From contig NIVC01000438.1 in the NCBI GenBank assembly GCA_002269645.1, forward strand, positions 287,379-351,378: a stretch of 64,000 nucleotides of DNA, written 5' to 3'. Positions within the stretch are counted from its first letter, which is position 1. Every line of letters starts with the position of its first letter. This document shows, one piece after another, positions 4,354-44,490 of this stretch. The position numbers and the translations under genes were made by a program. Below the pieces are notes generated by a model. It saw nothing but the letters and a program-made list of their open reading frames with translations. It was not told the origin of the DNA and ran no database searches. The stretch comes from Macrostomum lignano (Eukaryota).

Positions 4354-7300
4354 CTGCATGAATTCATTTAACTAGGCTTGAATTCAAGCTTATAGCTAAA
4401 GATATAAGATGATATTGTTGAGAATCGAGATACTGTTGAGCTAGCATCAATGATAAATTTCTTAGTATATTTAAGCAAGCTTAACAATATTCTAAGTCTC
4501 TAAAACCTCCATTAAAGCTATACATATTATACTTAAATGACTTATGACTTTGCTATATTAATCAACATTGGCAGTCTAAGATAAAAGCTAATAATCCCCA
4601 AGGACTAAGATCTAGCTTAATATGGCATTTTTGACAGAGGTAGACTATTATATAGGGTAATAACCATTCATTTGCTAATTTCATATGCTACTTTAAAATC
4701 CAATTTATTCATTAATTGTTGATTTCCTATTGGTTAAAAATTCAATTAGAATTCTATTTAACTTTATCTATGACTAACAATAGACAAATACTTAGTTTTA
4801 CCCAATTGAGTTCCATAACTTAAGGCATACCAATATGAATATACAATTCAAATTTATACAAAAGGTTTTTGGCAAAGAAATAGGGCTAAAAGTTTCAATG
4901 AAATTGTAAAGAATAAGAAGCAAATATAAATTTGGAAAAGGTAAAAAGTTTTCATAAGATATATCTGGCATTTGTTTGGATAATAACAAGCTTATATTGT
5001 TATTCAAAGGCTTACTAAAATATAAAATTGCTTAAAAAAGATTTTTTAATTGAAGATGGTACATTCTAACACTAAAATAAAAACTATAGAACTTTTTCTC
5101 AGTTTTTATATATTAGATATATTTCAATCTTAGCCAACTTTATTAATTTTTCAACTTTTTCGACAGGTTAGCTTTTTAAGCTTTGTTGCTCTCAATTGAG
5201 AAACAAATTTTAATATGTTGAATTTTGTCTAGGGCTTATGTTAAAGAAAAATTTTACTCTTTAACTTTAAAGAACTTTAACTCTCTTTAACTATATAGTA
5301 GAGAGCCTACTGATATGTCTATAAAGGTTTTAGTCACTTTGTTTGCCACTAACTTGTCTGCCAAAAATACATGTAATAAGTCTATAAGCTAATCTACTAG
5401 TAATCTGTCTGCTACCAACTTGTTCACCAATAGCATTAAATTAGACATGCATTTCTATAATCTAAACTACAAATTTTGTGATTATTTACCTTATATTATA
5501 TATATATTAAAAAACTACTTATACTAGGCCTATTAATATTATAGATGGACTGATTTTTAATAAAACTTTAATTTTGCAAAATAATAATAAAAGCCATTAT
5601 AAATGACATGACATTTCTATTTTATCATTTTGATAATATTTCTAAATTTGAAGCTATTTTATTTCATTCTTTTACAAAAAACTTTTTATTTCTTTTGAAT
5701 TACTGAAAAAGTATACATAGGCCTGTACATTAATCAATATACAATCCATAAAAAAAACCTAGTTAGTAAAAGAAATTCATTTAATAAAGAGCAAAATGAA
5801 TGTCCCTATCTATAAAAAACAAAATATATCCATTGCTTACAAATATTTGAATAATTTTATAATTATTTGATAAACTATATTAACTTATTTTCTTTACTTT
5901 TTAGATGGAATCAACTTAGCCTACTTGTGAGTTAAAAAATGGATTGCAAATGCAATGACTAGGCCTAGATTCTAGAATTCTGTCTATGATAGGGCTTACA
6001 TTTTATGTGTGAGGTTTATTTTGGATATTTTTAAGTTTTTTGCTGTTTTAGCTATATTAGATATAGGCCTAATTAATCAATATAATAAATAAAAATAGCC
6101 TAAAAAGTAGCAAATTTAGGGGAGAGGTGCATAGGGCAGGTCTTATAAAGTTAGAATTTTTTATGGAAAACACATGTACATGATAGACTATGGCTATACA
6201 TAGGCCTATTTATATACCTTAGCAATTGGTACCCATGCCTCTACCCCATTTAAATTTTCTGGATTTATTGTGGATAAAAATAAAAAAACTAAAAATAATA
6301 TATGACAATAATTTATTGAACAAAGTTATATGGAAATATTTATTAAAAAATAGTTTTTAAGAAAAAATATTATTACATGAATACAGCAGTCAGACAATAC
6401 TTAACAGCTTAGGCTAGGCCCTATTACTACTAGAGAGTAGAGCTTAGACAAAATTTTACAAATATGAAAGTTGATGAAACATTTAGAAGAATTGAGATAA
6501 AGTGTTACAACTTTTTATTACTTGACCACTTCTTAAGAGCAAGGTGTCTTTCCACTCAAGACAAATGAGAATTATTAAATGGGATAAAAATAGGTTAAAA
6601 AAACTAGCCCTCGTACTAAAAAATTAAACTTTTAAAATCTTGTTGCAACATATGAGTATGACTTTATTTACACTTCAGGTTATTTTTATTAACCTAAAAC
6701 TTTATTAGGGGTTGTTACTCTTTAGGCAATTAGGCTTATTATTATTAGGTAATCAGACAAAATTTCTTGATGTGCAATGATTTTATCTATTGCCTTTTTG
6801 TCTGCAGGCAGACGAAACAACTTATTCTAGGCTCTAGCAGACAAATTGGATGCAGGTCCTAGAATTTTCTTAGATGAAACATTTTCTGGGTTAGGAAAAA
6901 TATCCACATCTGGATCCTACTTGGAATATTTACAACTTTAATTATAATAGGCTATAACTTTATCTTCTGTATCCTGTGATCTTCATGCTTTAGGGTCTAC
7001 TACTTGCTGTCTTCACTCTTCAACTAAGCCTAATCCTGCGTTATCCTGTAAGCAATAAAGAAAGAATAGAGTGGGAAAATTGCCTTTGATATATTGCTAC
7101 TTTCCGTACTTTTTACTAGCACTAGCTAACCAGTAGGGCCTAACAGCTCCCGATTACACACGTGATGTCACGTGGACTGCCGTTGAATTAACTTTCTTTT
7201 TTAGCGACTTTAAACTGTTTTTCCAGGAAAACAAAAACTACACTTTAACAAAAACCTGGCATGAGTAATTGCATGAATCACTTCCTCAAAAAATCCAATT

Positions 7301-7473
7301 ACGAATCTTTGAGGACAGAATAAAACTTCCAAGCTATCTAGCCGAAACTATAAACTCTACAATCACAAAGTTTCAGTAGCAAGGATTTCATAATTCACAA
7401 TTGCTTCCAAAATGTGAAAGATCGAAAACTTCAAACTAGAGGGATGGTGTTTTTACGACGATGTACGAAGCTT

Positions 7474-10400
7474 CACCCGTGTCGCAATTATATGGTGGCT
7501 TTACAAGCATTTTTCTGCACGAAAAAAAACGGCATAGTAAGCTAACTTCTGCATGCAGATATGCATTTTCTACATGCATTTTCTAGCCTGACTGGAAAGC
7601 GTGGCGGCAATTTAAAATCGTTTATTTGCGTCGCGTGCACGCCTGCTAGCTAGCTCAGCTCATTATGGATGGGGGCTGAAGTGAAGCGTAACACAACACA
7701 AATGGCCGTACACAGAGAAGGGCAGCACGCTCTGTGCTACGCTCCCAAACGAGCTAGTAGTATGTTTAATACGCTTTACGTTTAATACACATACACATGA
7801 AATCTTGACAATTAGTGACGAATGAAAATAGTCATTCCTACTTTCTTCTAGGCCTAGTATTTCGCGCCGTAGTCATGTGATCTTATTAGCCTATACAGTT
7901 TTAAATCTATTTTCTTTTCTTTTATATTATATTATAGCTTCATGTTGTACCTATAAATTCTCCCTAAATATGGTTCTTTTCGATCTTAAGACTACAATTC
8001 ATTTAATTTTAGACCAACTTTAGTCCCTTTTTAATTAGCTTTATTTTTGACTAGTTCTAAGGCTAAGGGCTAAGGCCAAGAATATTAATGTAAGCTTAAG
8101 CCTAAGAAGGCTTATTAGCCTCTATTGTCTTTTAATTTATTTGCTCTATAGACTATAGTTAAATACCATGCACATTTCAATAAACATTTTTGATAAATAA
8201 GATTTGACCATATATTTATAATTTAAAAAATATATATTTTAGTCTAGGCTAGGCCTAGCTACATATAATAAAAGTTAAGTTATAAACAAACATATTCAAT
8301 AGAATACAATTATGAATATCAAAAACTAGTATAAACTGACTAGCTAGGCCACTTATTACACAGGCTACTAGCTATTTATTAATAGGTCTACTATATATTA
8401 TATAATATGAGTCATAGTATTTTTGGCTTAACTTTCTTCTTTTTTGCCTTAGCCTCTAGCCTCCACCTTCCCTTCCTCTCTAGCACTTGCCACTTACCCT
8501 AAGTTGCAAATCTAGAAAATTTTTAAGGAGGGGCCAAGCTATACCAAGCACTATAAACCCTATATTGGAAAATAGACCTGGCATAGTTAGCAGTCCAAAA
8601 AAGTATGGTCAAAATTTCTTTGGCTGCAACTGAAGGGATCCGCCCTTGTTACCCTTTCTTTTTTCCAGCCGTACCTTTTAGCCCTACCCTCTCCTTCCTT
8701 CTAGCCCCTAGCTTCTCTCCTCTAGCCTTATCCTCTTCTCTCCTCTAGACTTCACCCTCTTCTCCCCTCTAGCCCTCACCCTCTTCTCTTCTCTAGCCCC
8801 TACCCTCTTCTCCCCTTCAGACTCCACCTCTCCTCCCCTTCCGACCTCACCCTCTCCTCCCCTTTAGATCCCATTCCCTTCTCCCTTCCAGACCCCACCC
8901 TCTCCTCCCCTTTAGACCCCACCCTCTCCTCCCCTTCAGTCCTCACCCTCTTCTCCCCCTCAGACCCCACCCTCTCCTCCCCTTCAGTCCTCACCCTCTT
9001 CTCCCCTCTAGAATCCACCCTCTTCTCCCCTCTAGCACCCACCCTCTTCTCCCCTTCAGATCCCACTCTCTCCTCCCCTTCAGACCCCACCCTCTCCTCC
9101 CCTTCAGATCCCACTCTCTCCTCCCTTCCAGACCCCACCCTCTCCTCCTCTTCAGACCCCACCCTCTCCACCCCTTCAGACTCCACCCTCTTCTCCCCTT
9201 CCAACCCCACCCTCTCCTCCCCTTCAGATGCCACTCTCTCTTTCCTCCCTCTCAGACCCCACCCTCTTCTCCCCTTCAGATCCCACTCTCTCCTCCCCTT
9301 CAGACCCCACCCTCTCCTCCCCTTCAGACCCCACCCTCTTCTCTCCTCTAGCCCCTACCCTCTCCTCCCCTTCAGTCCTCACCCTCTTCTCCCCTCTAGC
9401 CCCCACCCTCTTCTCCCCTTCAGATCCCACTCTCTCCTCCCTTCCAGACCCCACCCTCTCCTCCCCTTCAGATCCCACTCTCTCCTCCCTTCCAGACCCC
9501 ACCCTCTCCTCCTCTTCAGACCCCACCCTCTCCACCCCTTCAGACTCCACCCTCTTCTCCCCTTCCAACCCCACCCTCTCCTCCCCTTCAGTCCTCACCC
9601 TCTTCTCTCCTCTAGAATCCTCTTCTCCCCTTCTTCTCCCCTTTATCACCCTCTTCTCCCCTTCAGACCCCACCCTCTTCTCCCCTCTAGAATCCACCCT
9701 CTTCTCCCCTCTAGAATCCACCCTCTTCTCTCCTCTAGCCCCCACCCTCTTCTCCCCTTCAGATCCCACTCTCTCCTCCCTTCCAGACCCCACCCTCTCC
9801 TCCCCTTCAGACCCCACCCTCTCCACCCCTTCAGACTCCACCCTCTTCTCCCCTTCAAACCCCACCCTCTTCTCCCCTTCCAACCCCACCCTCTTCTCCC
9901 CTTCCAACCCCACCCTCTTCTCCCCTTCAGATCCCACTCTCTCCTCCCTTCCAGACCCCACCCTCTCCACCCCTTCAGACCCCACCCTCTCCACCCCTTC
10001 AGACTCCACCCTCTCCACCCCTTCAAACCCCACCCTCTCCACCCCTTCAGACTCCACCCTCTTCTCCCCTTCCAACCCCACCCTCTTCTCCCCTTCAGAT
10101 CCCACCCTCTCCTCCCTTCCAGACCCCACCCTCTCCACCCCTTCGGACCCCACCCTCTCCACCCCTTCAGACTCCACCCTCTCCACCCCTTCAGACCCCA
10201 CCCTCTTCTCCCCTTCAGAACCCACCGTCATCCCTTTAGATCCCACCCTCTTCTCCCTACCCTTCTCGCCAACACTTCCACTCCTTACCCTCCTCCCTAT
10301 ACCCTCATTCCCTTACCCTCATTCACTTGCCCTCCTACTTTCGCCCTCCTTCGCTATCCTTCACACCTACCGTCCTCTACTCTTCCCCCCTATCCCCTCC

Positions 10401-10562
10401 TCTACCCACCTTCCCTCTACCTCCTCCCCTTACCCTTTACCCTCTTCCCCATTTGACCCTACCCTCAACCCGGGCTGTCTTACCCTACCATAATCGCTGC
10501 CCTCTACCGTCTTTATGATCTACCCCTCTAGTGTTCTCTGCGGTCTACTGTCTTCCAGGCCT
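7474..10562 (+). repeat. Left terminal inverted repeat (~3.09 kb)
   Basis: Reverse complement of 22972-26085. The mirrored ORFs 9228-10493(+) / 23041-24330(-) are identical except for one extra 8-aa unit. Confidence 0.95.
8740..10230. repeat. 24-bp C/T-rich minisatellite (CCTTCAGACCCCACCCTCTCCTCC-like) inside left TIR
   Basis: Degenerate tandem array; source of the PSDPTLSS / EGEERVGS pseudo-ORFs; mirrored at ~23290-24800. Confidence 0.93.
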
Positions 10563-11540
10563 CCTCTACCCTTCTCCCTTACCCCTTCTTACCCCTACTT
10601 ATTACCCTCTGCCTTACCATCTTTTCGTTGCCCTATTCCCCTACCCTTCTCTCCTACCCTCTCCCTACCCTAGAGCAATCTTCTCCCCTACCCCTTTCCC
10701 CTTACTCTCCTCCCCTACCCTCTTCCCTCCACTCCCGATAACCTTAAGCCCTCTTTTCCTACCCTCCATCCCTATCACCCTCCCCTACCCTCCTCCCCTA
10801 GAGGCTTACCTGTACCACTCCCCCACCCTCCTTCCCTAGCTTCCTCCTCTTACCTTCCCTACCCTCCCCCGACCATATCCTTATCCTTATCCTTACCCTA
10901 TTCCTTTACCCTTCTTCCCTACTCTCCCTACCTTCTTCCCTCTAACCCCACACCTCCTCTACCCTCTACTTCTTACCAACCGCTCTACTTACTCCTTGCC
11001 CTCTTTCCCTACTCTCTCCCTCCACCATAACCGCAACCCCTTTTTCTAATCGTCCTTTTCTATCCTCCTTCCCTACCTCCTCCTACCCTCCTTCCCTATC
11101 CTCTTCCCCTACTCTTTCCCTCACTCACTGCTGGAAGAAGCTCTCTCTACCCCTCCCCTGCCCTTAACCCCTCTTCCCCTATCCTTTTTCCCTAGCTTCC
11201 TCTTACCCCCCCCTTTCCTAAGATCCCAACCCTCCCCCGACCTCTACTCCTTGCCCTATTCCTCTACCCTTTCTCCTGCCCTCCCTACTCTCTTCCTTCT
11301 ATCCCTCCCTCTACCTCCTCCTCTACCATCTACTTCTTACCCTTCGTCCTAACCTCCATTCCTTGCCCTCCTTCCCTACTCTGTCCCCTATTCTCAACCT
11401 CCTTTTCCCCTACCCTCCTTACCCTTCTCTTCTACCCCGTACCCTCTCCCTCTATCTCCTCTCTACCCTGCTCCCCTAGCCTTCTTTTCTACCCTTCTCC
11501 TCTCCCTTTTCCCCATCCTCTTTCCCAACCTCCACCTCTA
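10563..11540. repeat. Polypyrimidine low-complexity tract between left TIR and passenger gene
   Basis: Almost exclusively C/T with CCCTA/CCTCT motifs; absent from the right arm. Confidence 0.85.
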
Positions 11541-11629
11541 CTATTTGAAACCATAATGACATAAAACTTCCAGATTGTCGTAGCTACCTGTACCCACTCT
11601 ATAATATATATTTACTTCCCTGATTTCAG

Positions 11630-13213
11630 GAGCCGGAACTGACGAGTTCCGCTGTAATGAAACCCTGGCAGGGTTTCATTTCGCACACAGTCGGTAGCAA
11701 TAGGGATTTCAGCAGTGAGTTCATCCGTATTATATTATTTCACTCTTGTCTTTTTAATTTTCCCATTTGTACACATGCTTACTGATTTTGCCGCGCTTCC
11801 AATCATCGATAATTTTCTCTTCAGAGGCTAGAATTTCCAGAAGAAAAAGTTAGCTGAAAAATATTCAATGGGACGTTGTCATTGACCTTAGTAGACCCTA
11901 TGTGCATGTACACTTACTGCATTTTCATTTCATTCAAAATTTTGTTTCTTTAGAGAACGTGAAGGAGGCATCCCGCGTTTTCAGCAGGCTCTCAGATGAG
12001 GAGAAGAAAAAATTCGGCAAACCGATACCTCTACGCGAGCTACAATCGCGTGCCGTGAAAAGGCTTAAACTTACAGTAAGCCGTCTGTCGCTCCATTTCA
12101 TAGTCAATGCTTTTTTGTGGTGCCAATATTATTTTATTCTTTATTTTAAGCTGGAAGAATGTGAAAGTGCGCAAATTAGAGTGTGCGGCTGCGCTTCAGC
12201 CTCGACTATAAAGGACGTCATCGTATTGGAGACGTCACGCGAACAAGGGCTCGTGGCGGAATCCGGTATTGTTGATGTAAGCATATGCATACCGTTTATA
12301 GTCTGTGCTAATTTGTTGATTTATTGAAACTAAATGTAAACTTTGAAATCTTTTATCTTTATCGTTTATCCCTTTGCAGTGTTTGATCGCTCGAACCCGC
12401 AGTAATTCTTCAAAATCAAAATTTACCGTTTCTGAATTGCGTCAACTCATCCCACCAATTCTGAGCGAGAAGTACCGTAAGTGCACAACATTCAACTTAT
12501 TTTACGGGCGAAGAGCGTATTATGATGAAGCGGGGTAGAGACCGTACGGTGTACTGATTTTGTCGCATTTCGACAATTCCTTGTCGACAATTCCTAACCT
12601 CCATTCCTTGCCCTCCTTCCCTACTCTCTCCCCTATTCTCAACCTCCTTTTCCCCTACCCTCCTTACCCTTCTCTTCTACGTACCCCGTACCCTCTCCCT
12701 CTATCTCCTCTCTACCCTGCTCCCCTAGCCTTCTTTTCTACCCTTTTCGATTCTATGTAAAATTTTGCTGATAGAAGCACAAAATACAGCACAGTGCCGA
12801 TTCGGCTAGCAGAACGTATGCTAAATTGCAACATGATTGCAGGAATTTGTAATAGCCATTGCTCAGTTCAATTACAATGAGACATATGAATGATTTGGAA
12901 CACAAATGCAGAATCTGATTGTTCATTTTGCATTTCAGGAAAAGGTGGAGGTATTGGAAAATTTTCATATGCAAGCGTTGGCGCTGGCGGAGCATGGGTA
13001 GGTTGGCCGGTCGGTGCTCCTCGCGAAAAGCCGCTAAACGCGATGTCGAAGGACGAATTGATGTCATTGTGGATTTCGAAAGAAAATTTGGCATTTGTTG
13101 CCAACAAAGGCGAACGAAAGCGTTGCCGTCGACCTCACGTGGCTGAAACTGTTGACATCGCAAGTTCCACTGACGCTGTGGCTGACCCTGAAGTTCATGT
13201 GATTCTCGACTAA
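11630..13213 (+). CDS. Transposon passenger gene, HMG-box-like protein (~225-234 aa); exons 11630-11714, 11954-12075, 12151-12276, 12380-12476, 12939-13213
   Basis: Five exons with strong GT-AG sites join in frame (705 nt including stop; phases 1,0,0,1). The N-terminus MKPWQGFISHTVGSNRDFSKNVKEASRVFSRLSDEEKKKF follows the HMG-box pattern (KrP..aF..f ... W/F..Ls.eeK..Y/F). A possible start is the ATG at 11657. The domain call is by eye. Confidence 0.62.
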
Positions 13214-13399
13214 AAGACTAGTCTATCAAACATACAGGGGCTAACCCTTGCACTAAGGTTGACTACCCTAATCCGGTCTAGAAGTCTAGAGACATGAAAT
13301 ATGATATGCTTATTACTATTATGCTTATCACCGGCACTCCCAAGAATTGGCCCCTAACTCTCAAAATATCGCCCTTGACCGCTTCCAATAATCACACCT

Positions 13400-13540
13400 G
13401 GACCCTCAAGAATCGCCTTTTAACTTCAATAACCGCCCCCTTACCCCAACAATCGCCCCCTGACCCCAAAAATCGCCCCCTGACCCCAAAACTCGCCCCC
13501 TGACCCCAACAATCGCCCCTTACCCCAAAAATCGTTTCCT
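13400..13540. repeat. ~20-bp tandem repeat (AATCGCCCCCTGACCCCAAA)
   Basis: Five to six degenerate adjacent copies. Confidence 0.8.
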
Positions 13541-14522
13541 ACAAGCGTAACCCCCACCAAGTTGCTGATTATTGCTTTTTTAGTTTTCTTAATTTTTACA
13601 TCGTTAGAGAGGCCTTTTTTTGACTTACTTAGAATGCTCAGGCACTCTGGCTCCAGCTGCTGTGCAGTACTGTTGAATTTCTTGGTACTTCTTTAATGGT
13701 TCTTATTCGTTAAATATAAAAGTTGAAACAGCGCGCCAAACGCATCGATGCACGTGCCTATTAAATTGTTATAGTACTGTTCTATGGCAATTGCGGTTTG
13801 AAGTTTTTGTTTTAACAGTTAGCTAAATTCCTTGTGTTACAGTCAAACGATGCATATCGAAATTTTTTATTCAGCTATTTAACATCATGCGTTTCGGACC
13901 TTTCTTGCGTTGACACCTCAAGCTTCAGAGTACTTTGAGACCCGCCTATTCAGTACTCAAGTCCCCACTCCTGAGCTCGTAGACAGCCCCATGGTAGCAT
14001 ATTGATGTGAACGAGTGGCAAGGTTCTACAGCCAACAAGAGAAGACGGCTATCTAAAGTCTATAGCCGATAAGGGATACTGCATAGACAAGATCGCACGG
14101 TTATTCAAGTCGTAGTGTTCCCACCGCAGCGAATTTTAATCGCTGAGCGATTTTAAATAGATGAGGGGTTTTTTGTCGTAGTTTTCAATTTTCAGCGACT
14201 TTTTATTCTGGAGTAAGAATCGTTAGATTCTGGAGTAAGAATCGTTAGAGTAAGCAGTAAGGGTCTGTAAAACTGCATTAACCCTCTAACGATTCTCTCC
14301 CCAACATTGACGAACCCCCAGCCAGTTCCCCCAGTGTAAAATGGCTGATAGATATCAAAGATACATGCATGCCCAATGTAGCAATAGCTTAGAATTCTTA
14401 GTTTTTATAGGCTAGCCATTTATACCAAACCCGGCCCATTCTAGCTGCAGATCGAGCGGCCACCAATAGACAGAATTGCGTAGAAGTCATCTATGGTTAA
14501 TTTGAAATTTTTTGCATACATG

Positions 14523-14750
14523 TAGACGGGCGGATTTAGGGGGGGGGCGGCCGCCTCCCCCCCCCCCAAATAGCTTGACCGAACATATTGCGCCCCCAAA
14601 AACCTAAATTTGCGCCCCTAAACTTGATTTTTCGCCCCCTATATGCATTTTTTGCGCCCCGTAGCTTAAAATTGGCGCCCCTTACACTCGTGTTGGCGCC
14701 CCAAACTTGGACCGCCCCCCCCCTAAAATGAAACTCTGGATCCGCCACTG
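14523..14750. mobile_element. MITE with GGCGGAT...ATCCGCC termini
   Basis: GGGCGGATTTAGGGGGG at 14528 and CTGGATCCGCCACTG ending at 14750; GC-rich GCGCCCC interior. TSD unclear. Confidence 0.65.
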
Positions 14751-14989
14751 CATGTAGATTCAATACAGGTCAAGTGGATCCACACGCAGCCGTGGAGTGG
14801 ATTGAGCTGGACTAAAAAACGTATTTACGCTGATTTGAAGAGCACTGGAAATTCACTGAAATTGAAGCATCGATATCTCAGCAACTACTCAATATTTTGA
14901 CAAGCAGTAAAGTACAGCTGGTGCAGAATTTCTATACCTATATTATGAAGTAAAATTTCATGCCCCAGATCCATCGTTTTGGGGTACAC

Positions 14990-15469
14990 TAGCTCGTATG
15001 TCTCGGAAAGAAGTGCATTTTGGCATAACTCTAGTAGTGGAATAGGCATCTTTACGCTCCAATGCTGGAGTTTCCTTTATGCTCCAATGCTGGAGTTATA
15101 TCAGCTCCAGTATTGGAGTTTCGGTTTTGGAACCGGAAAAGTGCAGATAACTCCACCGGACAACCTTCTGGCGCTCTGGGACCGCCGCCAATCGACTCAG
15201 GGAGCCGAAATCTCTCAGAAAATGTATCCCCCGGCCTAGGTGCACTTGTCAAATACACCTGATCAACCTGCTGTCAGTATAATGATTCTCCAAGTAAGCC
15301 GGCTGTCCTGCAACTAATCAAAACTACGCCAGCCACTGAGCAGTGTCGCACTAAACTGCACGCTAAAATCGACCATCAATCTAGTATGGAGTCTACAAGG
15401 CTCCAATTCTGGATTCCTTTATATATTCCACTACTGGAGTTATGCCAAAATGCACTTCTTTCCGAGCTA
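14990..15469. mobile_element. MITE with ~45-bp TIR
   Basis: CTCGGAAAGAAGTGCATTTTGGCATAACTCTAGTAGTGGAATA (~15002) is inverted to TATTCCACTACTGGAGTTATGCCAAAATGCACTTCTTTCCGAG (~15424-15466). Confidence 0.7.
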
Positions 15470-15640
15470 AAGCAGTTATATATGTCTAAGGTTAATCGTG
15501 ACTTCGGAATTCCTTCCTCGTACAAACTTCAGCCATTAAGAATATAGGAGGACTATTATTAAATTACAGCAGCCAATAAAAATTAATGGGGAGAACATCG
15601 CTCATTCAGATTGAGCGATCCTTTCTATTCCTTCATCCGT

Positions 15641-15841
15641 TGGGCCGACTCGTATGCAGAAAGCCTAGTCCAGACTAGCTAGTCCGGACTTGGGTAGTTC
15701 AGTCTATAGTCTATGGTCTAGCTAGCCTAGTTCTGCTATAGTAGACTGGTCTAACTTTGTGTTTCTGCATACCAAATCCAAGTCTAGGTACTAGCTTTTC
15801 AAGACCGGACTACCCTAGACAGAGCTTTCTGCATACGGCCC
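15641..15841. mobile_element. Small MITE (GGGCCG..TATGCAGAAAGC termini)
   Basis: GGGCCGACTCGTATGCAGAAAGC versus GCTTTCTGCATACGGCCC. Confidence 0.55.
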
Positions 15842-15938
15842 ATGGTCATAGCTAGCTCGTGCATGCTGCCTATTCTGATATACATGCAGCAATAATTCAC
15901 TCTTTGTAACGCAGTTTGCAGGGCGACTCTTTGTAAGA

Positions 15939-17295
15939 CTCAGCAACAGTCAAAAGTTCCACCCTCCAAGCGAGATGGAATTTTTCTCACTTATTGTGAG
16001 TTACGCAACTTGCGGCACGCAGCGAAGCTTGTCACTTGGGGGGCTTGGGTCTGTGTAATGGTACAAAACTGCGTAACTTTAAGAGGACAAATGTTCAGTC
16101 TAATCCATGCACACACGATTTCAAAAATGGTCCGGCAAATGACTAATGCTGAACGATGGCGTGCTGTTGGAATTCTGGAAGTCGGTGTGTTCATCAGTGA
16201 AGTTGCTCGCAGATTTGGAAGATCGCGAGCGGCAATTCGAAAACTGCTGACAAAGTCCCGTGAGACTGGCAGCGTGGAGCACGCTGCGAAAGGCAGTCAG
16301 CGCCTGCCTTTTATGGGGTGAGAAAAGCAGAGCAGGAAACATCCTGAGCGCCTAAGACAGTTCGACGTCGAATTCGTGAGAGTGGCTTCCGCTCTCGCAA
16401 GATTCGCAAGCGGCCTCGACTCAGTAGAGTCCTGCCCATGTGCACATCGCCAGCCGAGAACAGTGGGCGATGCAGCGCGTCCACTGGAGGCAGCAGCAGT
16501 GGCGACGCGTTGTTTTCACTGACGAGAGCCGGTTCCAACTTTTCCAAGCAGATGGTCGCTGCACCCGCGTTTGACGAGAACCGCGGCGGGAGATGCTGCA
16601 GCAGCATGTACAGTGCGCTGAGAGCCAGGCTGCCTCAGTTCACGTTTGGGCCGGCATCTCGCTACTTTCAAGGACGGATATCGTCTTCCTGGATGCCAAC
16701 GTGAACGCTAATAGCTACGCAGATTTTCTGCAGACTCGGTTCCTACCGTTTGCCGACGCTGCTTTCGGAGGAGGTGGCAACTGCATTCTCCAGGATGATA
16801 ACGCGCCGCTACACCGAGCCGATGCTGTTGGTCAAGTGAAAGAGCAGCTACAGATCCGCACTCTGCGCTGGCCTTCCCGGTCCCCAGACATGAATCCAAT
16901 CGAGCATGTCTGGGACTTTCTAAATCGCAGCATTCGAAAAGAGAATGCACCACAGAATGTTGCGGAGCTACGTCACGCCATTGAAAACGCTTGGCAGCAA
17001 CTTCCCCAGGACTTTCTGCGCCGCCTCATCTTGGGGATGCCCGCAGAGTCGCCGCTCTTCTGCGTGCGAGGGGATCTCACACGCGGTATTAAGCATTGCA
17101 ATTCTAACTGCATATTGCATAGAAAATAAACTTGTGATTTTGTGCAACTGGCATTTATTATTGATTCAATCACTCTTCCCTCCTCGCGGCGTACTGTACC
17201 TGGTAGTTGCGTAACTCGCGGGTTGAAGTGTGAGCGATAAGAATTATCTCTGGCTAGTAGGCGCGATAGGGGTGGAACTTTTTAATGTTGCTGAG
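15939..17295 (+). mobile_element. Tc1 (DD34E) element, decayed
   Basis: Imperfect TIRs CTCAGCAACA...AAAAGTTCCACCC / GGGTGGAACTTTT..TGTTGCTGAG followed by TA. Transposase fragments include an HTH (EVARRFGRSRAAI), FTDESRF, VWAGIS, QDDNAPLH and WPSRSPDMNPIEHVW, with 34 residues between D and E. Frameshifts and stops are present. Confidence 0.92.
16127..17129 (+). pseudogene. Tc1 transposase pseudogene
   Basis: Split across ORFs 16010-16321 and 16593-17129 by stops and frameshifts. Confidence 0.88.
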
Positions 17296-17320
17296 TATAC
17301 TTCAGACGAGCAATCCATTA

Positions 17321-17497
17321 CTCAGCAACATTGAAAAGTCGCCACTCTATGCGCCAGTGAGCAGTTTCTTTTGGACTATTCGGAAATAAAAGATACGAGA
17401 AAACTGATCGGGTGGCTTTAATCCGTCCAACCCTCGCACACCGCACACCACAGACGGAATCTTCTGCAGGTGATGGCGACTTTTCGATGTTGCTGAG
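17321..17497. mobile_element. Tc1-type MITE, TA-flanked
   Basis: TA|CTCAGCAACATTGAAAAGTCGCCA ... TGGCGACTTTTCGATGTTGCTGAG|TA; same terminus as the adjacent Tc1. A second, interrupted copy lies at ~17546-18003. Confidence 0.8.
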
Positions 17498-17728
17498 TAT
17501 AGTAATATATTATTCATCTACATGTATGGCTGAGCTGAGATACAGTCAGCACATTGAAAAGTCGCCATGCGACATTAAGCAATTTCTCTTGGATTATAAT
17601 ACAAAATAAAAACGAGAAAAATGATCGGGGTATACATGTAGCTTTATCCGTCAAACCCTCGCACACCGCTCCCCCACTTCATTCCTCAACTCGTCTGCCG
17701 CGGCGTAGCTAATTAGTTGCGTCACTCG

Positions 17729-17912
17729 CAGGGGCGGATGAAGACGGGGGCCATGGCCCCCCTCCACCCGCGGCCAAAAAATATTTGGTCATACTTTTTT
17801 AGACTGCTACTATGCCAGGTCTATTTTCCAATATGGGGTTTGTAGTTCGTAATGCTTGGTATACGAGTAGCTTGGCCCTGGCCTCCTCAAAAATTTTCTG
17901 GATCCGCGCCTG
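17729..17912. mobile_element. hAT-type MITE with 8-bp TSD
   Basis: CAGGGGCGGAT...ATCCGCGCCTG flanked by GTCACTCG on both sides (17721-17728, 17913-17920). A decayed copy sits inside both giant TIRs (~8495-8650, ~24910-25065). Confidence 0.85.
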
Positions 17913-18466
17913 GTCACTCGCAAAGGTTGAGATACATGTACTTTACCTGCACTCTCAAAAGTGGCGACCACAGACGGAATCTTGTGATGGCGATGTTGCC
18001 GAGTGTAGGTTGAGAAATTCTATATTGAGATCGCCTTGTACATGTATAGAGTACCAAGGCCAAAAGTTTAAGCCACGATTTTCGAGCTCCTACCCATCCC
18101 CTCCGGTCGCCGAGATTTATGTCTGAAATTGACGCCTCGATCTAGACATACGTTCAGTGCAGCATACGGTGTCCGCGCTGTCGAGTCTGATGAAAGACTT
18201 GATTGGTGACATGCATTGCGACAAGTTGATAAAGCCAATCCATGTTACGAGTGTTTCTGTTTAAAGTCGGCAGACGATCGATATTTGTAGTCCCAATATG
18301 CAGTCGGAAATCCAATCACCCAACGAATTCCATCGTAGCGTACATGCATAACAAAGAAATAAGGCAGTACAAAGAGCACTAGCAGACATGTCTCAACAAG
18401 TTTCATTTCTTCTTTTGAATCAGATATACTAATTTTTTTTTTGACTAAATTTATTCAGATTCGCAA

Positions 18467-18993
18467 CAGGGGCGTAGGGAGCTGGGGGGATAGGGGGATG
18501 TACCTGGTATCCCCCCACCGAAGAGCCTGGCCAAAACTTTTTCTGTTGCCCCTTGTTGCTATACATGCTACCATGTGACTCTGTCATAACACTTTTACCT
18601 TGGTGTATCCCCCCGTAGAAAATTCACCTTGGTGTATCCCCCCGTAGGAAATTCACCTTGGTGTATCCCCCCGTAGGAAATTCACCTTGGTGTATCCCCC
18701 CCGTAGGAAATTCACCTTGGTGTATCCCCCCGTAGGAAATTCACCTTGGTGTATCCCTCCCGTAGGAAATTCACCTTGGTGTATCCCCCCGTAGGAAATT
18801 CACCTTGGTGTATCCCCCCGTAGGAAATTCACCTTGGTGTATCCCCCCGTAGGAAATTCACCTTGGTGTATCCCCCCGTAGGAAATTCACCTTGGTGTAT
18901 CCCCCCCGTAGGAAATTCACCTTGGTGTATCCCCCCCGTAGAAAATTCACCTTGGTGTATCCCCCCCGTAGAAAATTCCTGGCTACGCCCCTG
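18467..18993. mobile_element. hAT-type MITE with 8-bp TSD and internal ~30-bp tandem array
   Basis: CAGGGGCGTAG...CTACGCCCCTG; TSD ATTCGCAA (18459-18466, 18994-19001); ~12 copies of TTCACCTTGGTGTATCCCCCCGTAGGAAA at ~18595-18975. Confidence 0.87.
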
Positions 18994-19130
18994 ATTCGCA
19001 ATGGGATAAACAGTCTCCTCTGAGTGCAGTTCGTACAAGGTAAGCCGTAAGGTATTACATGTATAAATGCTGAAGGCAATAAAGCAATTAATGAATGTAC
19101 CAAAAATTTAACTGAATATACTAATGCAAA

Positions 19131-19331
19131 GGGCTTGTCAACTTGAGCTCATAAAGTGGAGCCCGAGTAACCTAATATTACACAAATTATATGCCATTCA
19201 AACAAATTAGTCCAATTTTCATCACTTTTTCGCCAAACCCTGCTTTTTGGTGTCACTGCGAGCAAAATGACACATAACTTTTGTACATGATTTACTCGGG
19301 CTCCACTTTATGAGCTTAAGTTGACAGAGCC
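19131..19331. mobile_element. MITE with ~40-bp TIR
   Basis: GGGCTTGTCAACTTGAGCTCATAAAGTGGAGCCCGAGTAA versus TTACTCGGGCTCCACTTTATGAGCTTAAGTTGACAGAGCC. Confidence 0.8.
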
Positions 19332-19555
19332 TTTGAATTACTGGACAATAAAACGCACAAATACAAAGAGCGGCAAAATACAAATGAAAATTCAGAGTAG
19401 AAAAATCGAAAAAACAATTAAATCCACAATATAAGTCAAACTACATGTAATATTACGAGCGTAATTGTGCCACTCAGTCAATATACGAAGCACGAGCTTG
19501 AGTTCACTGAATATTCAGCAATCATCGTTGAGACAAGAGACAATAGAAGACTGAA

Positions 19556-22500
19556 TTATTCAATGGAATCGACAAAGCACTGCTGATCCGGAAAATTTTT
19601 TAAATGGTTTTGAATAAGCAGACGAAGACCATCAACTCGGACAGCCATTAGCGCCTCGACAGGTTCACCAGCAGAGGACGTTAGCGCAGACTGCATGCGG
19701 ACAAGGGCGTCTGATAAAAAGCGAGTCACACGAGCAATTTCCATCTGGACGATTCGAGGCTCCTCTTGCAGTCGTTGAATCAGGTTATTAAGTCGGATTG
19801 CCTCAATGTGCTTTCCTCGGTCAAGGCATCCGAAATCAGAGAACCCTTTCGACTGGGGAAGATTGAAATCTTCAAAGCGGAGCATTTGCGCTCGAGAAGA
19901 ACGCGAGTTAAATTCCCGAATGATTCTATTCGCTTTCCTTTCGGAAGCCCTGATGGCATTGCGAAGGCGTTTGGATAACTTCTGTCCTCGTTCAGTAGCA
20001 GTGCGCCGCACTAAAAAGTCACGCTCACAGGCCAGTCGATGGAGTCTTTCAATTGTCTTCCTTCGTCTAGTGGGTCTTCGGCGAGTGGTGCTATACATGA
20101 TCCGCAATTCGGCCTCCCACTGAGCAGCCAAGTCATGAAATCCGTCGATATCATCTGATAAGGTTGGTAGTGGCGCAAAATGCATTGCATGAATTAGGGA
20201 ATGAAATAAGCTTCGTGCTGAGCTCCAAATTGCAGTTAAGCTTAGAAGGAAAAATTATTTGAATTTACCGTTGAGTCCATTATTCAGCATGAATTGTTGG
20301 ACATCCTTTTCGAGGCTATTGCGGAACGTTTCTATATAACTGATTCGTCTCTTTAGCCAGGAAGCTGTAATTTAAAGGTGTGGAGCATTGAAGACGGCGT
20401 AATACTATAAGAACCACAACTACAGAAAATATGGAAAGTACCTACAAATAGTAAGGAGCTTGTGAAAGTTTAGAGAACAGGCAATGTGGCAAAGAAACTG
20501 CCTGCGATGTTTGTGGCTCATTTCTTTTAGCTGAGGACCGTAGCGTCGCAGATTTGACCACAGCGATTCGCAGCTTTCGCCATCTGTCAGGCCGGCACCA
20601 TTGGTGAAGCGAATTCCAGCTGTCATCTGGCAACCAAAATTGTGGCCGTAAGCATGCATAGCAGGAATCGCGAATTTCAAGCGATCATTTTTAAAATGTC
20701 CGGACAGCTTGCACGCAATGTCATATACGACAGTAATCGGTACTGACGACGGCACCTCTTCAAGCATCTGAGTGACCATGGCGTACGAGTAGTTCAACCT
20801 AAAAAGGACAATTCAAAGTTCGCTGTTGTTTCGCTTGCAAATAATTTAATATGAATTGCAACAAAAACGAGTATTTACCTTTCACCAGCAGTGATAATGT
20901 CAGCTAGATAGCGAATACACCCGTGTCTACATGAGCCACAGAAACAACCGAAAACATCCAAGTTCTTAGCGTCGGAAGCGGATACAAGCGCCTGTCCACG
21001 ACCACCTGCATTCCAGTTTGCGCAGTGGTCCTCACTGGGCTCCTTATCGTCCTCAATGTTCACGTTGACAAAAAAAGGTCCTTCTGTTGAAGGTAAGCAT
21101 TCCTTTCCAGCACTGCTACGATGCCGAATTCCAAAACACCCGTCCAAGATAAGGAATACTGGAGCTGCTTGCTCACTCTCATTTGCCTGACCCAGTGATG
21201 GAGGCTCGTGACTCGACGCGGGAGGCTCGTGACTCGGCGAGGGAGGCTCGTGACTCGGCGAGGGAGGCTCGTGACTCGGCGAGGGAGGCTCGTGACTCGG
21301 CGAGGGAGGCTCGTGACTCGGCGAGGGAGGCTCGTCACTCGGCGAGGGAGGCTCGTGACTCGGCGAGGGAGGCTCGTGACTCGACGCGGGAGGCTCGTGA
21401 CTCGACGCGGGAGGCTCGTGACTCGGCGCAGGAGGCTCGTTACTCGGCGAGGGAGGCTCGTGACTCGGCGAGGGAGGCTCGTGACTCGACGCGGGAGGCT
21501 CGTGACTCGGCGCAGGAGGCTCGTTACATTGGCGTTCTTGAAGCTGAAATGGATGTATTGTAATGAATCATACAAAATATGAGGGTATCCAAAAGACATG
21601 GCATGACATCACTCGACTGGTTCCAAATTTAAGTTCAACCTCCTCTTCCCAGAAAATGGCTTACAAAGCAGGCAGCGCATTCCAATTTTCCAGACCATCG
21701 CATGTCCTGCAGCAGATGCTGAAAGGCTGTCATTGAGCCATAGGAGTTCAGCATGCGGTAGATATTCACCTAAAATATCACAATTTCTTAATTATTATTT
21801 TGCAAAGTGTAAAGGCGTATAAACAAAGCGACACACAAACGGTACTACGAGCTCTTACCGGGTTAAGACGCCACATGGAGGACTTGACGAATTGAATTGC
21901 TTGGCATATAGAATACAGCGAAGCAGTCGTATACTGCCGGAGAGATTCGATTGTCATCAAAAGCCGAATCGAAATGGCTTTGGGAACAAACGCTCTCTCT
22001 GGATTAGAATGAATGGGCCAGTAGCCTTTTCCAATAAATACCTCAGTTAGTGAAATGCAGCTGCAAAGACTAATTCGTACATCGATATCTTCACCTAGAA
22101 AGTTGCCAGCGTAGGTATGTACTAGATTGCAGTTTATAAAGTTAAATCGCAACAACCACAGCAAAAAACAGCGACAGCCAGATTTAGAAAAATGCCTACC
22201 TTCTTCGTTTATGAAGACAGCATTTCTGTTTGAGTAGCGAGACAAACCGCATTTGCAGAGACACTCAATGTCCGTCACGGTGCGGTCTCTAACGAAGTAC
22301 TTGCCCTGAAATCAGTACCCATAAACTGCTATATTTACGCATGAGTTATATTTGTTTGTACGAGTTCAGAAAAAAAGGTGCATGAACTCACGTTCCATTT
22401 CTCTACAACATGCAGCGGTCTGTGTCGATGATGAAGCTGCAAACAATGGTGGCACACAGTTGACAAGTGACAAGTGGTACATCTAAAAATGTTGTCCAAC

Positions 22501-22938
22501 TCAGATGCACCACATAGCTCACAAGAAGAGCGAGCTTTAAGTGTTTCGCCAAAAGCATTCAAAAGATAATCTCGATTTCGATTCCACATCTCATTGCTGT
22601 ATTCCACACGCTTGGAATGGTTTGCTGTTGACGATGGCATGCTATGCTCTTGACGCAATTCGGTCTCCGTCTCACTCAGTGGCAGCCATTCAGCATCATC
22701 CGGAGGCTTCTCGCTAAAGAATTTTTTTTTACAAACAGAATATCATAGCATAGCATCTAATTAACATGATGCTTCTAAAGAAAATAGAAGATTGTTGTGC
22801 GACTTTAACTTACGAACAGGAAGGTTCAATTCTTGAGTGCTTCACGGGAGCAACGTTTACCGGAATTTGGGCTGTACGCTTTCCTCTACCAGCCACGAGC
22901 GACTTTACATTTCGCCGAAAAGCTCGACAAAAAACCAT
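19556..22938 (-). CDS. KDZ transposase with CxC cysteine cluster, 749 aa; exons 22938-22814, 22713-22392, 22305-22200, 22094-21859, 21769-21665, 21186-20879, 20798-20446, 20364-20269, 20154-19556
   Basis: Nine GT-AG exons total 2250 nt with consistent phases and no internal stop. Motifs: C..C...FRCTTC...C..C...H...PLH (CxC-type), ISLCSC...GYWP, LECAAC, LDGCFG, DVFG...CRHG...GER, VYDIACKL, FAIPAMHAYGH...CQ, GAGLTDGESCESLWSNL. These match the known KDZ catalytic core. Confidence 0.92.
21190..21525. repeat. 21-bp minisatellite (GGGAGGCTCGTGACTCGGCGA) in intron 5 of the KDZ gene
   Basis: ~16 tandem copies; gives the EARDSAR / VTSLPRR pseudo-ORFs. Confidence 0.95.
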
Positions 22939-22971
22939 AACAGCTGAAATCACAAAAGAAGGAGAGTAAGA

Positions 22972-26085
<3,114 letters not shown>

Positions 26086-27029
26086 GAAGCTTGCATATAG
26101 GGTCAGTTTTCCATGGTATGAATTTTCGAGACTAAGAAATCTCGAGCTTTTGACACGCCGAAAATGGATGTAGCTGTATCCTACACTATCGAAAGCGACA
26201 AATTTACCTGCAAAATTTTGAGCCATGCAGTTAACTTATTAACAGTATATCAATACCAAAGGGAGAGCTGAAATTTTTGCAGCGCCGGAACGGAGCAACA
26301 CAGGCACAGGAAATTCTTTGATGTCGCTGACCAAAAGTAACAAGATCATATATGGCAACTCTTTATTAACCTCCCGTCATTCTGATCTGTATGATGTAGG
26401 ACTCTCAAAACAGTCCAGCATCACCGACGCGATGACGTGCATGTAAACTTTAATGCGACGTGGTTAGTTTATTATATTGTAATCGAACCGAGTTTTTACG
26501 AAGATCAAGCTAAAATGTGATCAAAAGTAACTAAAAATAAGGCTACTATAAAATTTAGAAAATTATCTTTCAGGTGTACGGTCCAAGTCATGCATGCATG
26601 GTTTCGACTGCTGAAGGTGCCGACGACGGCTGAATGAAGATCGAATGCTGGAGAAACGCATCAGTTAATTTAGGTCTGCCAATAATCTGCCAATAAATGT
26701 ATATTGCAACAGGATCTCTATAGCTACTGTAGTTACATGATGCCATCTTTTGAAGGTGCCGACGACGTCGAGGTGATGTTTGGATGCTTGAGAGCTAGAC
26801 TATAGCTGAGGATTTCCAGCAGCTGAAGTTTTCCACCAGTTGCTCTCTCAAGGCTATGATCAGCGAAGAACTAGAGAGAAATTCGCATCAGTGTCCATAT
26901 AGTCACCTGGTGCCCAACCTGTTGAGGGTTCAGGAGCTCCGTCTGGGTGAAGACCAGCAGGGACCAATGAGGTGAGAGCTGATGCAGACACGTGTGGAAT
27001 TTGAAGGCTTGGCAAGGGTCTTTAAAATT

Positions 27030-36228: not shown

Positions 36229-39200
36229 ATGGAGCGCAAGCAACAGGCGGGCTCCACATCGCCCGCGTCAGCGAAGCGGAGTCGCGGCAAGCGTATCTCG
36301 TCGGGTGTCAGAAAAGTTCTCACTGGCCAGCTGGCACAGATGGTGAATGAGCAGTCAAGCGCTGAACAACCAAGAGGAACGAGAAGCTATCAAACCGAGG
36401 TTCCAAATCCTGCAAGTCCAGTGGGTCAGCTTGAGAGCAGTGGAGATCAGGTTGGGTCGTTGTTGGGCCAGCTACGAGTACAAAGCTCCCCCATCGGTGA
36501 GGCACATAATCAGGAAGTACAACAAGTTGGTTCGCTGGTAGATCAGTCTGGAAGCTTGCCGCTTGGTCATCTCGATGTTCAACAAAGACCACAAGGCAGT
36601 TCGTTGGCTGCTCAGCTTGGAGGTTCATTAGGTAAAAAATTGGGCAAGAAAAAGAAAGCCGGCTCAAAGCTTGCTGGGTCGTTAATAAAGCAAGTTGGAG
36701 AGCAAGGAGACAGCACCGGAAGTGCTATCGCTGGTCAACTTGGTGGGTCACTGCTTGGACAGCTTGGCGGAGGACAAGGACGACAAGGCAGTGGACACGA
36801 AGGATCGCTGGCTGGAAAAATTGGCGGGTCACTTCTTGAACAGTTCAGCGGAGGACAAGGCGGAGGACAAGGAGGAGGACAAGGAGGATCGCTGGCTGGT
36901 CAACTTGGCGGGTCACTTCTTGGACAGCTTGGCGGAAGACAAGGCGGAGGACAAGGAGGACAAGGCAGTGGACACGCAGGATCGCTGGCTGGAAAAATTG
37001 GCGGGTCACTTCTTGGACAACTTGGCGGAGGACAAGGCGGTGGACAAGGAGGAGGACAAGGAGGATCGCTGGCTGGTCAACTTGGTGGGTCACTGCTTGG
37101 ACAGCTCAGCGGAGGACAAGGCGGTGGACAAGGAGGAGGACAAGGAGGATCGCTGGCTGGTCAACTTGGTGGGTCACTGCTTGGACAACTCGGAGGAGGA
37201 CAAGGCGGTGGACAAGGGGGTGGACAAGGGGGTGGTTCACCGTTCGGACAACTGGGTGGTTTGGCAGGAGGTGGTGGCGGCGCGAAGCCTCCAGCAGCAG
37301 GCGGTGGTAAGGCAGGTCCAGCCGCAAATCCTGTGCTTAACACTGTGGCATGCAGCGCATTTCAAGGAATACGAAGAGCTGCAGAAGCAAAGAGCATCCC
37401 GATGAAGGTGTACTGGATTCTTATGGTTTTAGTTTCTGTCGGAATGTTCATCCAAGGCGTAACCAATTTGACAACTAAGGTTCGAACTGTACAAGTAGTG
37501 AGAACGTACCAAATGGACAAGGTGCCCTTCGTGTTCCCAGATCTTTACTTCTGCCCAAAGAACGCTTATTCTGGTAGTTTTCCGTTTACACTAAATCAAA
37601 ATCAGGCCGACGTGGTAAATCGAGAAGTGGCCAAGCTGAGCAAGCTTTATGATGAACAGTTGGCAACAAGCGGTCTCGATGAGTCGTCTAAAACAAAGGT
37701 TTGGTCAATTCAGCAATCCCTGCCAGTTCATATATTGCACGACTACATCTTTCATCGGCCAAAGCAGTCTTTGTTTTACCCGCCAATGATTTCATACCAC
37801 GGCAAGATCAACTATGAAACAGTGTTCCTTCCAAAGGGCAGAATCTGCTTCAAAGTCGCTCTAAGTGACGAAGACAAAAGGGTGCTAATTCGCAGACAAA
37901 ATCAGGAGACACTTCGACTGGCTCTATTCACGGATCCGCCATTTCGCGACTTCAAATATGCCGGGGAGCTAATCAATCCGATCTTCAATCCGAAGACCAA
38001 CGAGACGATACCATTTAGAATGTGGTACCCATCTGGTATAGTTAAGACGATGGCATCTGGATACACAATGCTGGTGGTACCTGCCGGAGTCTATCCATCG
38101 CTGGAGCACGAGAGCAAGTTTCTACTGGCGCCGGGTAAATCCTACGACATCGACATTCACATGGAGGAGCACAAGTTCAGCCCCGAGTTGTGGGACACGC
38201 ATTGCTCGCCGCAGCAGAAAACTGCCTACTTTGCTGACCACTTTACTGGCAAGAAAGTTGAATACAACTATAGCTACGATGCGTGCTATTACACAGAGTT
38301 TGCTCGATAACTGCACAAGATCGGCGGTTACATTCAGCAAGGTTTCCCCGTTAGTTGGGATCTTCGAGGTAGTCCAAGATGGGGTAACCTGTCAGAGAAC
38401 AGCAAGATTAACCGGAGCACCATCGAATATGGGATGGACTTAACCAAAGCCGATGAATCGGCTAATCCAGTGAAATTTTGCAATAGCCAACAGGCTTGCG
38501 TGCAACAAAAGTATGTTTCATCGTTTTCGTTTCATAATTGGCCCTCAATTGGCGGATCTTATTCGGCCGCTTTTCAACAGACGGATCCGAATGAGCAACC
38601 CGCAATTTACCAGCTAGCCACCATTGCCAAGCAGTTGGACGCAGGTAAGTTTTTCAATACATGTATATGTGACGCTTAGTGCCTAATTAGTATTATGTAA
38701 TTGTATTACAGTGAACAAACAAAGTACACAAAAGCACACAGACACATCAATGCTTGTATTCGTCCGTCTGTCAGGTCGGTGGTTCGATTCTCGACCCACT
38801 CGGAACAATTTGTGTCCTTGAGAAAAAAACTTAACTCTGCATTGCTTCAGCTCATGCAGCAGTAAAATATGTGCAGCATTAGCTGGGGTAATTGAGGGCG
38901 TGTGTGGCGACCCCCCAGTCCTTGGACTAAACAGCCGTACGCAGCCTTCAGATGCGCCGCGCAATAGCTGGGGCTGAGCTGTCGGTGGCACATCAGGCCC
39001 AATTGGGCAGGTATTTTCAGTTATTATTAATTATTATTACTCGCCCGGCAACATTCCAATGTCCGCCGACTTACTCGACATACCCGACGTCGTTGGAAGC
39101 CGTTGAAAAGTATGTAACATTACCTATTTTCCTGGTGATGTCGATAGATGTCAGAAACTTCAGTCGATGTAAATAGATGTCAAAAACTTCAGTCGATTTC

Positions 39201-43910: not shown

Positions 43911-44490
43911 TCTCTCTTGTTTGGCGCCCCTGTCTCTCTTGTTTGGCGCCCCTGTCTCTTGGTTGGCGCCCCTAGCCCTGTTTCTCTTGTTTGGCACTCC
44001 TGTCTCTTGGTAAGCGCCCTGTCTCTTGGTGAGCGCCCCTGTCTCTTGGTAAGCGCCCCTGTCTCTTGGTAAGCGCCCCTGTCTCTTGGTAAGCGCCCCT
44101 GTCTCTTGGTTGGCGCCCCTAGCCCTGTTTCTCTTGTTTGGCACTCCTGTCTCTTGGTAAGCGCCCCTGTCTCTTGGTGAGCGCCCCTGTCTCTTGGTAA
44201 GCGCCCCTGTCTCTTGGTGAGCGCCCCTGTCTCTTGGTAAGCGCCCCTGTCTCTTGGTGAGCGCCCCTGTCTCTTGGTAAGCGCCCCTGTCTCTTGGTAA
44301 GCGCCCCTGTCTCTTGGTGAGCGCCCCTGTCTCTTGGTAAGCGCCCCTGTCTCTTGGTAAGCGCCCCTGTCTCTTGGTAAGCGCCTCTGTCTCTTGGTGA
44401 GCGCCCCTGTCTCTTGGTAAGCGCCCCTGTCTCTTGGTAAGCGCCTCTGTCTCTTGGTGAGCGCCCCTGTCTCTTGGTGAGCGCCCCTGC
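43910..44490. repeat. 20-bp minisatellite (GTCTCTTGGTAAGCGCCCCT)
   Basis: Visible array abutting the 15-bp array and sharing the GCGCCCCT core. Confidence 0.95.

Follow-up and report, generated by a model that had tools for sequence, protein, structure and literature searches.

We analysed a 64-kb window of DNA from the flatworm Macrostomum lignano (the whole stretch under study, to which all positions refer unless another locus is named), which is eukaryotic and rich in tandem repeats, with a candidate gene at 11657-13213 (+) as the subject. This gene lies inside an 18.6-kb KDZ transposon (7474-26085) that also holds the gene of the KDZ transposase, and the C-terminal core of its product (residues ~118-192) looks like a GTF2I domain in predicted fold and in sequence profile, although it is not a member of the GTF2I family at the level of Pfam. 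We lean towards the view that the gene codes for an accessory DNA-binding factor carried by the transposon, a role suggested by its predicted fold and its genomic position. What appears to be new is the GTF2I-like fold assignment and the conserved linkage to an animal KDZ transposase, whereas the databases already contain the gene itself; a literature search for KDZ elements tied to GTF2I-like or HMG-like accessory genes or domains found no paper.

The candidate gene has five exons that join into one open frame, and all its introns have canonical GT donors and AG acceptors. Exon 1 (11657..11714, +; 58 nt) begins with the ATG at 11657 and is followed by a phase-1 intron. Exon 2 (11954..12075, +; 122 nt) and exon 3 (12151..12276, +; 126 nt) are equal in length to exons 2 and 3 of a paralog in a second locus (L001), exon 4 (12380..12476, +; 97 nt; donor gtaagt at 12477) encodes the helix that opens the GTF2I-like core (ELRQLIPPILSEKYR), and exon 5 (12939..13213, +; 275 nt including the TAA stop) contributes the remainder of that core (G.W.GWP...L..L....L.FV) together with a tail that is not conserved. 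Read from the first ATG, the joined exons comprise 678 nt (225 aa), with the TAA stop at 13211-13213; counted from 11630, they comprise 705 nt including the stop. An in-frame TGA (11621-11623) shuts the frame on the upstream side, and just past it lies an acceptor-like 'tttcag' (11624-11629), 27 nt 5' of the ATG and directly before position 11630. Trans-splicing is common in M. lignano (PMC5730564), and the 'tttcag' may serve here as a spliced-leader trans-splice acceptor. Intron 4 has 462 nt in the window gene vs 77 nt in the L001 paralog, because a CT-rich segment of 153 bp (11347-11499) was duplicated into it; the copy (12592..12748, +) is 99% identical, lies inside the intron and leaves the coding sequence untouched. 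A scan for sigma-70 promoters and terminators, which is not relevant to a eukaryote, gave nothing above shuffles.

The 225-aa product (hereafter P0001) matches the M. lignano UniRef entry A0A1I8GVQ9 from end to end with 100% identity. The original prediction had joined the five exons into a stop-free frame of 705 nt, and these joins were confirmed by the canonical splice sites, the open frame, the identity to A0A1I8GVQ9 and the intron phases of the paralog. It had also called the gene hidden, or invisible as a single open reading frame (ORF), which is true of a prokaryote-style ORF list only: because its product is identical to a public entry, the gene is not hidden but is a real five-exon gene that has already been annotated publicly. 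The peptides quoted in that prediction (the exon 1-2 junction peptide, CGCAS and GGAWVGWP) are all found in the product; codon K20 is split A|AG over the exon 1-2 junction, which is spanned by KPWQGF...EEKKKF.

A HMMER search of 1.84 billion representative proteins returned just three relatives of P0001, all from M. lignano. P0002 (PAA69595) shows 34% identity to P0001 over residues 4-200 (E 3.5e-24), P0003 and P0004 match it over residues 118-201 only, and a profile search brought in P0006 and P0007. Outside M. lignano, the family was found neither by HMMER on these representatives nor by word-indexed searches; a scan of metagenome contigs with family patterns produced 249 pattern matches, none of which was confirmed, and look-ups of the exact products P0001, P0007 and P0008 (the last a KDZ protein of M. 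lignano) gave nothing on record. Among seven family sequences, 13 columns are invariant (L122, R123, L130, K133, R135, G152, W154, W157, P158, P162, L175, L178 and F187), and the core follows the pattern LR..V..mL..K[FY]R ... G.W.GWP..P ... L..L ... FV. Since all of these columns lie within L122-F187, the family is defined by its C-terminal core. The N-terminal region, in contrast, is common to P0001, P0002 and P0007 only and is missing from P0003, P0004 and P0006.

P0002 is encoded in locus L001 (NIVC01001309.1) by exons of 52+, 122, 126, 94 and 350 nt, with the ATG 12 nt further upstream of the first exon stretch, and the intron phases are 1,0,0,1 both in this gene and in the window gene (58, 122, 126, 97 and 275 nt). 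The conservation of four intron positions and phases at 34% protein identity excludes chance as the origin of the exon model. The annotation that holds PAA69595, PAA65676 and PAA51807 was built from RNA-seq transcript assemblies (StringTie/TACO, TBONE, TransDecoder; PMC5730564), and the gene models of P0002, P0004 and P0005 therefore rest on spliced transcripts. Between the window gene and the L001 copy, codon position 3 differs most (0.68 vs 0.54 and 0.48), and the proportion of nonsynonymous differences (pN 0.50) is lower than that of synonymous ones (pS 0.79); a dN/dS estimate is not given for this pair because its synonymous sites are saturated at that pS. The automatic names of the family are unreliable, because UniProt calls A0A1I8GVQ9 a Plus3 domain-containing protein and a homologous member bears the unrelated automatic name photolyase/cryptochrome; neither name has backing from a profile or a fold. 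A Plus3 (Rtf1) identity was rejected, as Pfam gave no Plus3 match at E<=10 and no Plus3 structure was among the Foldseek matches.

The GTF2I-like (I-repeat-like) core comprises residues ~118-192 (12425..13111, +, across intron 4) and was delimited by the invariant columns, hhalign, AlphaFold and Foldseek. A search of the PDB with the family profile matched two GTF2I domains (2dn5 and 2dn4) over exactly the core and over the full length of the domain, with E of 0.7-1.2. For profile-profile comparison we used six human repeat sequences from the PDB, one of which was confirmed as PF02946: hhalign aligned the core with the GTF2I repeats over 66-70 columns (positions 1-72/76 of 83; P 6.6e-4 and 1.1e-4), at a probability of just 27-56%. 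As cross-controls, the core vs HMG gave a P of 0.55 and the N-terminus vs GTF2I a P of 0.27, and the score of the core with GTF2I (28.0) was reached by none of 200 column shuffles, the shuffle maximum being 19.3. An AlphaFold model that was computed from seven family sequences only and no templates predicts the core with a pLDDT of ~80-87, consisting of a helix (119-136), strands (~149-155), a helix (172-180) and a strand (186-188). When this predicted model was used as a query for Foldseek against 350,542 PDB chains, the top seven matches were all GTF2I domains, the best of them with probabilities of 0.99, 0.97 and 0.93 and target-normalised TM scores of 0.53-0.65; the PDB contains just ten distinct GTF2I-domain sequences. 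Foldseek against a viral library returned nothing above a probability of 0.08. Because the PDB profile search, the profile-profile comparison and the predicted structure converge, we call the core GTF2I-like. The region around GGAWVGWP, which had been described as novel, thus turns out to be the conserved core of the family and to resemble the GTF2I repeat by both hhalign and Foldseek. A PDB search with the single sequence gave just chance-level matches to Hsp70 tails, and a single-sequence AlphaFold model was discarded (pLDDT 38).

The gene resides in a KDZ element. The left terminal inverted repeat (7474..10565; ~3.1 kb) begins with CACCCGTGTCGC and contains a 24-bp tandem array (8732-10257), the right one (22969..26085) is 96-100% complementary to the left arm and likewise contains a 24-bp tandem array, and the outermost bases CACCCGTGTCGCAATTATA... 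are common to both element ends. A 7-bp target-site duplication (GAAGCTT; 7467..7473 and 26086-26092) is perfect on both flanks and contains the palindrome AAGCTT; an 8-bp reading has one mismatch, and Zisupton (KDZ-type) elements are reported with 8-bp target duplications (PMC12730594). The near-identical arms and the target duplication show that the entire unit, including the candidate gene, was inserted as one piece. The multi-exon gene of the KDZ transposase (19559..22742, -) is convergent with the candidate gene and was recognized by Pfam PF18758 and by collinearity with P0008: the KDZ domain scores 94.2 and 29.8 bits, both above the cut-off of 26.6 bits, and the window transposase is collinear with residues 12-669 of the 703-aa P0008; it is apparently full-length. 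The earlier suggestion of a KDZ element with ends ~18 kb apart is thereby borne out by the 18.6-kb length, the PF18758 transposase, the inverted repeats and the target duplication.

The linkage of both genes recurs in a second, diverged element. In L001, P0002 is encoded at 10001-11375 (+) and a KDZ gene at ~17171-20990 (-), 5.8 kb apart, and inverted CT-rich arrays (6405-7877, and 21184 to the locus end) enclose both genes. The order, orientation and spacing of the pair are alike in the window and in L001, although the transposases are just 36-67% identical, and conservation between both elements is confined to the candidate gene, the transposase gene, a Tc1 fragment and a ~125-bp repeat. When L001 and three other loci (L002-L004) were searched with the outermost 24 nt and the outer part of the terminal repeats of the window element, the 125-bp internal repeat was the only shared sequence. 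The same position, orientation and intron structure beside transposases of 36-67% identity indicate that the candidate gene has long been co-inherited with the transposase. A search with the KDZ transposase for further elements yielded only two UniRef proteins, without contigs, and the linkage rests on the loci named here; the context is known for three paralog lineages, two of which sit in KDZ elements.

Several other repeats and gene fragments were observed in these elements and in the remainder of the window. Between the candidate and the KDZ gene lies a decayed Tc1/mariner transposase (15896-17126, +), with DDE_3 and a Tc3-type HTH, split over three frames. L001 contains a collinear 102-aa Tc1/mariner fragment (14471-14776) with 67% identity to the window copy, suggesting that the insertion may predate the split of both KDZ elements. 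The ~125-bp repeat occurs in both terminal repeats (8514-8637 and 24921-25045), at 17770-17903 and in L001 (15233-15355) with 79-89% identity, and could represent a small repeat that is mobile or has a regulatory role. Within an open frame of the KDZ gene region, a 21-bp tandem repeat (21200-21524, -; 15.5 copies) reads in frame as an EPPSPSH-like repeat just upstream of the KDZ domain. Further away, two long open frames consist of tandem arrays, one of 15/30/45-bp units of GAPGAK type (42617-44680) and one of 84-bp Gly-rich units (36229-38310), which may be genes of repetitive structural proteins or merely satellite DNA.

The accessory role that we favour can be outlined as follows. The I-repeats of the vertebrate TFII-I proteins are independent DNA-binding modules (PMC3438194), and P0001 combines its GTF2I-like core with an N-terminal third that is a Lys/Glu-rich helical region. 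Such a protein would bind sequences in the long, repeat-filled ends of the element and would help to recruit the KDZ transposase, or help it to find, pair or regulate these ends. We prefer this reading because a module of DNA-binding type has been kept beside the transposase through a deep divergence of the elements. Several results weigh against it. No member of the family, and no isolated core, matches the Pfam GTF2I model (PF02946) at E<=10, although this model gives 107 bits for a human repeat, the positive control. With a small GTF2I HMM, P0001 itself is at chance level (its relatives reach p-values of 4.5e-5 to 5e-3), the E-values of Foldseek (0.18-3.7) and of the PDB hmmsearch (0.7-1.2) are individually non-significant, and the alignment behind the AlphaFold model holds seven sequences, of which ~4 are distinct. 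The core site of the vertebrate I-repeats, RGATTR, occurs 0 times in 2.8 kb of the terminal repeats. The near-identical loci L002-L004 (P0004/P0005/P0007 type) have no KDZ reading frame within 10 kb, which means that autonomous elements are not strictly the only setting of the family. Finally, no transcript-based record of the window copy was seen, P0001 being absent among the gene products of the contig collection. The outer 1.26 kb of the terminal repeats yielded no short subterminal motif that was conspicuously enriched.

The original prediction had regarded the gene as HMG-box-like and the exon 1-2 junction peptide as fitting the helix spacing of an HMG box; the N-terminus would then be an HMG box, and the protein would bend DNA to help pair the element ends, which we consider improbable. 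A short HMG-box-like motif was found in residues 16-42 (RDFSKNVKEASRVFSRLSDEEKKKFGK; 11702..12021, +, across intron 1), where FSK......F.RLS.EEKKKF aligns in hhalign with nothing more than helix II and the beginning of helix III. For the family vs eight reference HMG boxes, the alignment covers 27 columns (P 2.3e-3), and for the N-terminal profile alone 24 columns (P 3.6e-4), a score reached by one of 200 column shuffles; the per-sequence p-values of an HMG HMM are 0.002-0.01. The motif is common to P0001, P0002 and P0007, and in P0007 the distance from the tryptophan to the aromatic residue is about normal. In P0001 and P0002, however, this distance is 25 residues, whereas it is ~31-33 in SOX2 and HMGB1, and the junction peptide hence does not fit the spacing. 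The helix I region of P0001 is 5-6 residues shorter than that of P0007 and ~6-8 shorter than those of SOX2 and HMGB1, nothing aligns with helix I, only 24-27 of the ~75 HMG columns align at all, and a G-K-P-I-P stretch breaks the would-be helix III. Pfam gave no HMG_box match (PF00505/PF09011) at E<=10 for P0001, its N-terminal 66 aa, P0002, P0007, the N-terminus of P0007 or the other relatives. AlphaFold predicts the N-terminus with low confidence (pLDDT 43-64; helices 4-11, 18-30, 34-38 and 46-66), the HMG box is absent from the Foldseek matches of the model in the PDB at E<=10, and the region is missing from P0003, P0004 and P0006, so it does not define the family. Of the HMG-box-like gene there remains the motif of 24-27 columns from helix II and III, without helix I, Pfam match or structural match; the motif is real but short, the HMG-box reading is weakly supported, and a full HMG box is not demonstrable.

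Two further explanations concern the gene as a whole. It could be a passenger or a host-directed factor, in other words a DNA-binding gene that an ancestral KDZ element picked up or that is becoming domesticated; it would have no role in transposition and might influence host genes or the silencing of the element. Fungal KDZ elements carry TET/JBP genes as non-transposase cargo (PMC12730594), the family is small and lineage-specific, and the transcripts of P0004, P0005 and P0007 come from loci that lack a KDZ reading frame nearby, all of which would suit such a gene. Nevertheless, we hold this to be rather unlikely, since position, orientation and introns have been kept beside transposases that diverged to 36-67% identity, which fits co-function better than chance cargo. 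Moreover, the KDZ-less loci retain the 24-bp satellite of the terminal repeats 5-8 kb downstream of the gene (L002, 15730-18415; L003, 17281-18617; L004, 17542-19826), so these loci may represent elements that have decayed or are non-autonomous, or else solitary copies; they also hold reverse-transcriptase fragments. That the gene is non-functional, being a chance spliceable frame, an artefact of annotation or a decaying pseudogene, is very improbable. It might be invoked given that the product of the window copy is known from automatic annotation only, that a 153-bp repeat was recently inserted into intron 4 and that the automatic names of the family members are inconsistent. However, the open frame is uninterrupted and its splice sites are canonical, intron positions and phases have been kept at 34% protein identity, 13 columns are invariant in seven members, the paralogs are supported by transcripts, and the core is folded confidently by AlphaFold.

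To our knowledge, few DNA transposons have been characterised as little as the KDZ elements, and almost nothing is known of their workings in animals. A second gene that is conserved and whose product has a predicted DNA-binding fold is a concrete, testable candidate for the way in which the transposase recognizes very long, repeat-filled ends, and an accessory gene would give the KDZ superfamily a two-gene architecture. A GTF2I-like fold in a flatworm transposon would also widen the range of this domain, which has been studied in the TFII-I proteins of vertebrates, and would raise the question of whether the GTF2I domain originated from a mobile element. A bolder idea, to which we give little credence, is that the GTF2I repeat is an older module that existed as, or descended from, an end-binding accessory protein of KDZ transposons; if so, the flatworm gene would be a surviving transposon-borne form, and TFII-I would be another family of transcription factors made of transposon parts.

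Compared with the GTF2I repeat (PF02946; TFII-I, GTF2IRD1, GTF2IRD2), the core of the window protein has the same elements in the same order over ~70 aligned columns, namely a long helix (LR..V..lf..KY), a pair of strands around an aromatic-G-(L/W)-P turn, a helix (L..iL) and a final strand (I.FV), and its predicted fold matches seven solved GTF2I domains. It differs in being a single copy and not a set of tandem repeats, in its GWP instead of GLP turn and in the lack of a PF02946 match; moreover, its gene is borne by a transposon in a flatworm, and the element ends lack RGATTR, the core site in vertebrates. To the HMG box (PF00505), the likeness is confined to the motif of 24-27 residues from helix II and the start of helix III with its 'LS.EEK..F/Y' signature, whereas helix I, a Pfam match and a structural match are lacking, the spacing is shorter and a proline break is present. 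With the Plus3 domain (Rtf1), the protein shares the database label only.

At the level of the whole element, the Myb-like second protein of PIF/Harbinger and TnpA of En/Spm (CACTA) are accessory DNA-binding proteins that help the transposase at the transposon ends. The KDZ element resembles these systems in that a second, non-catalytic gene lies with the transposase between the terminal repeats, that its product has a predicted DNA-binding domain, and that the long repeat-filled ends could hold many binding sites. It differs from them in its superfamily (KDZ) and in its domain, which is GTF2I-like and not Myb/SANT. The fungal KDZ elements with genes of TET/JBP dioxygenases (PMC12730594) likewise combine a KDZ transposase with an additional conserved gene in one element, but the cargo of the flatworm element is a small putative DNA-binding protein instead of an enzyme, and its host is an animal.

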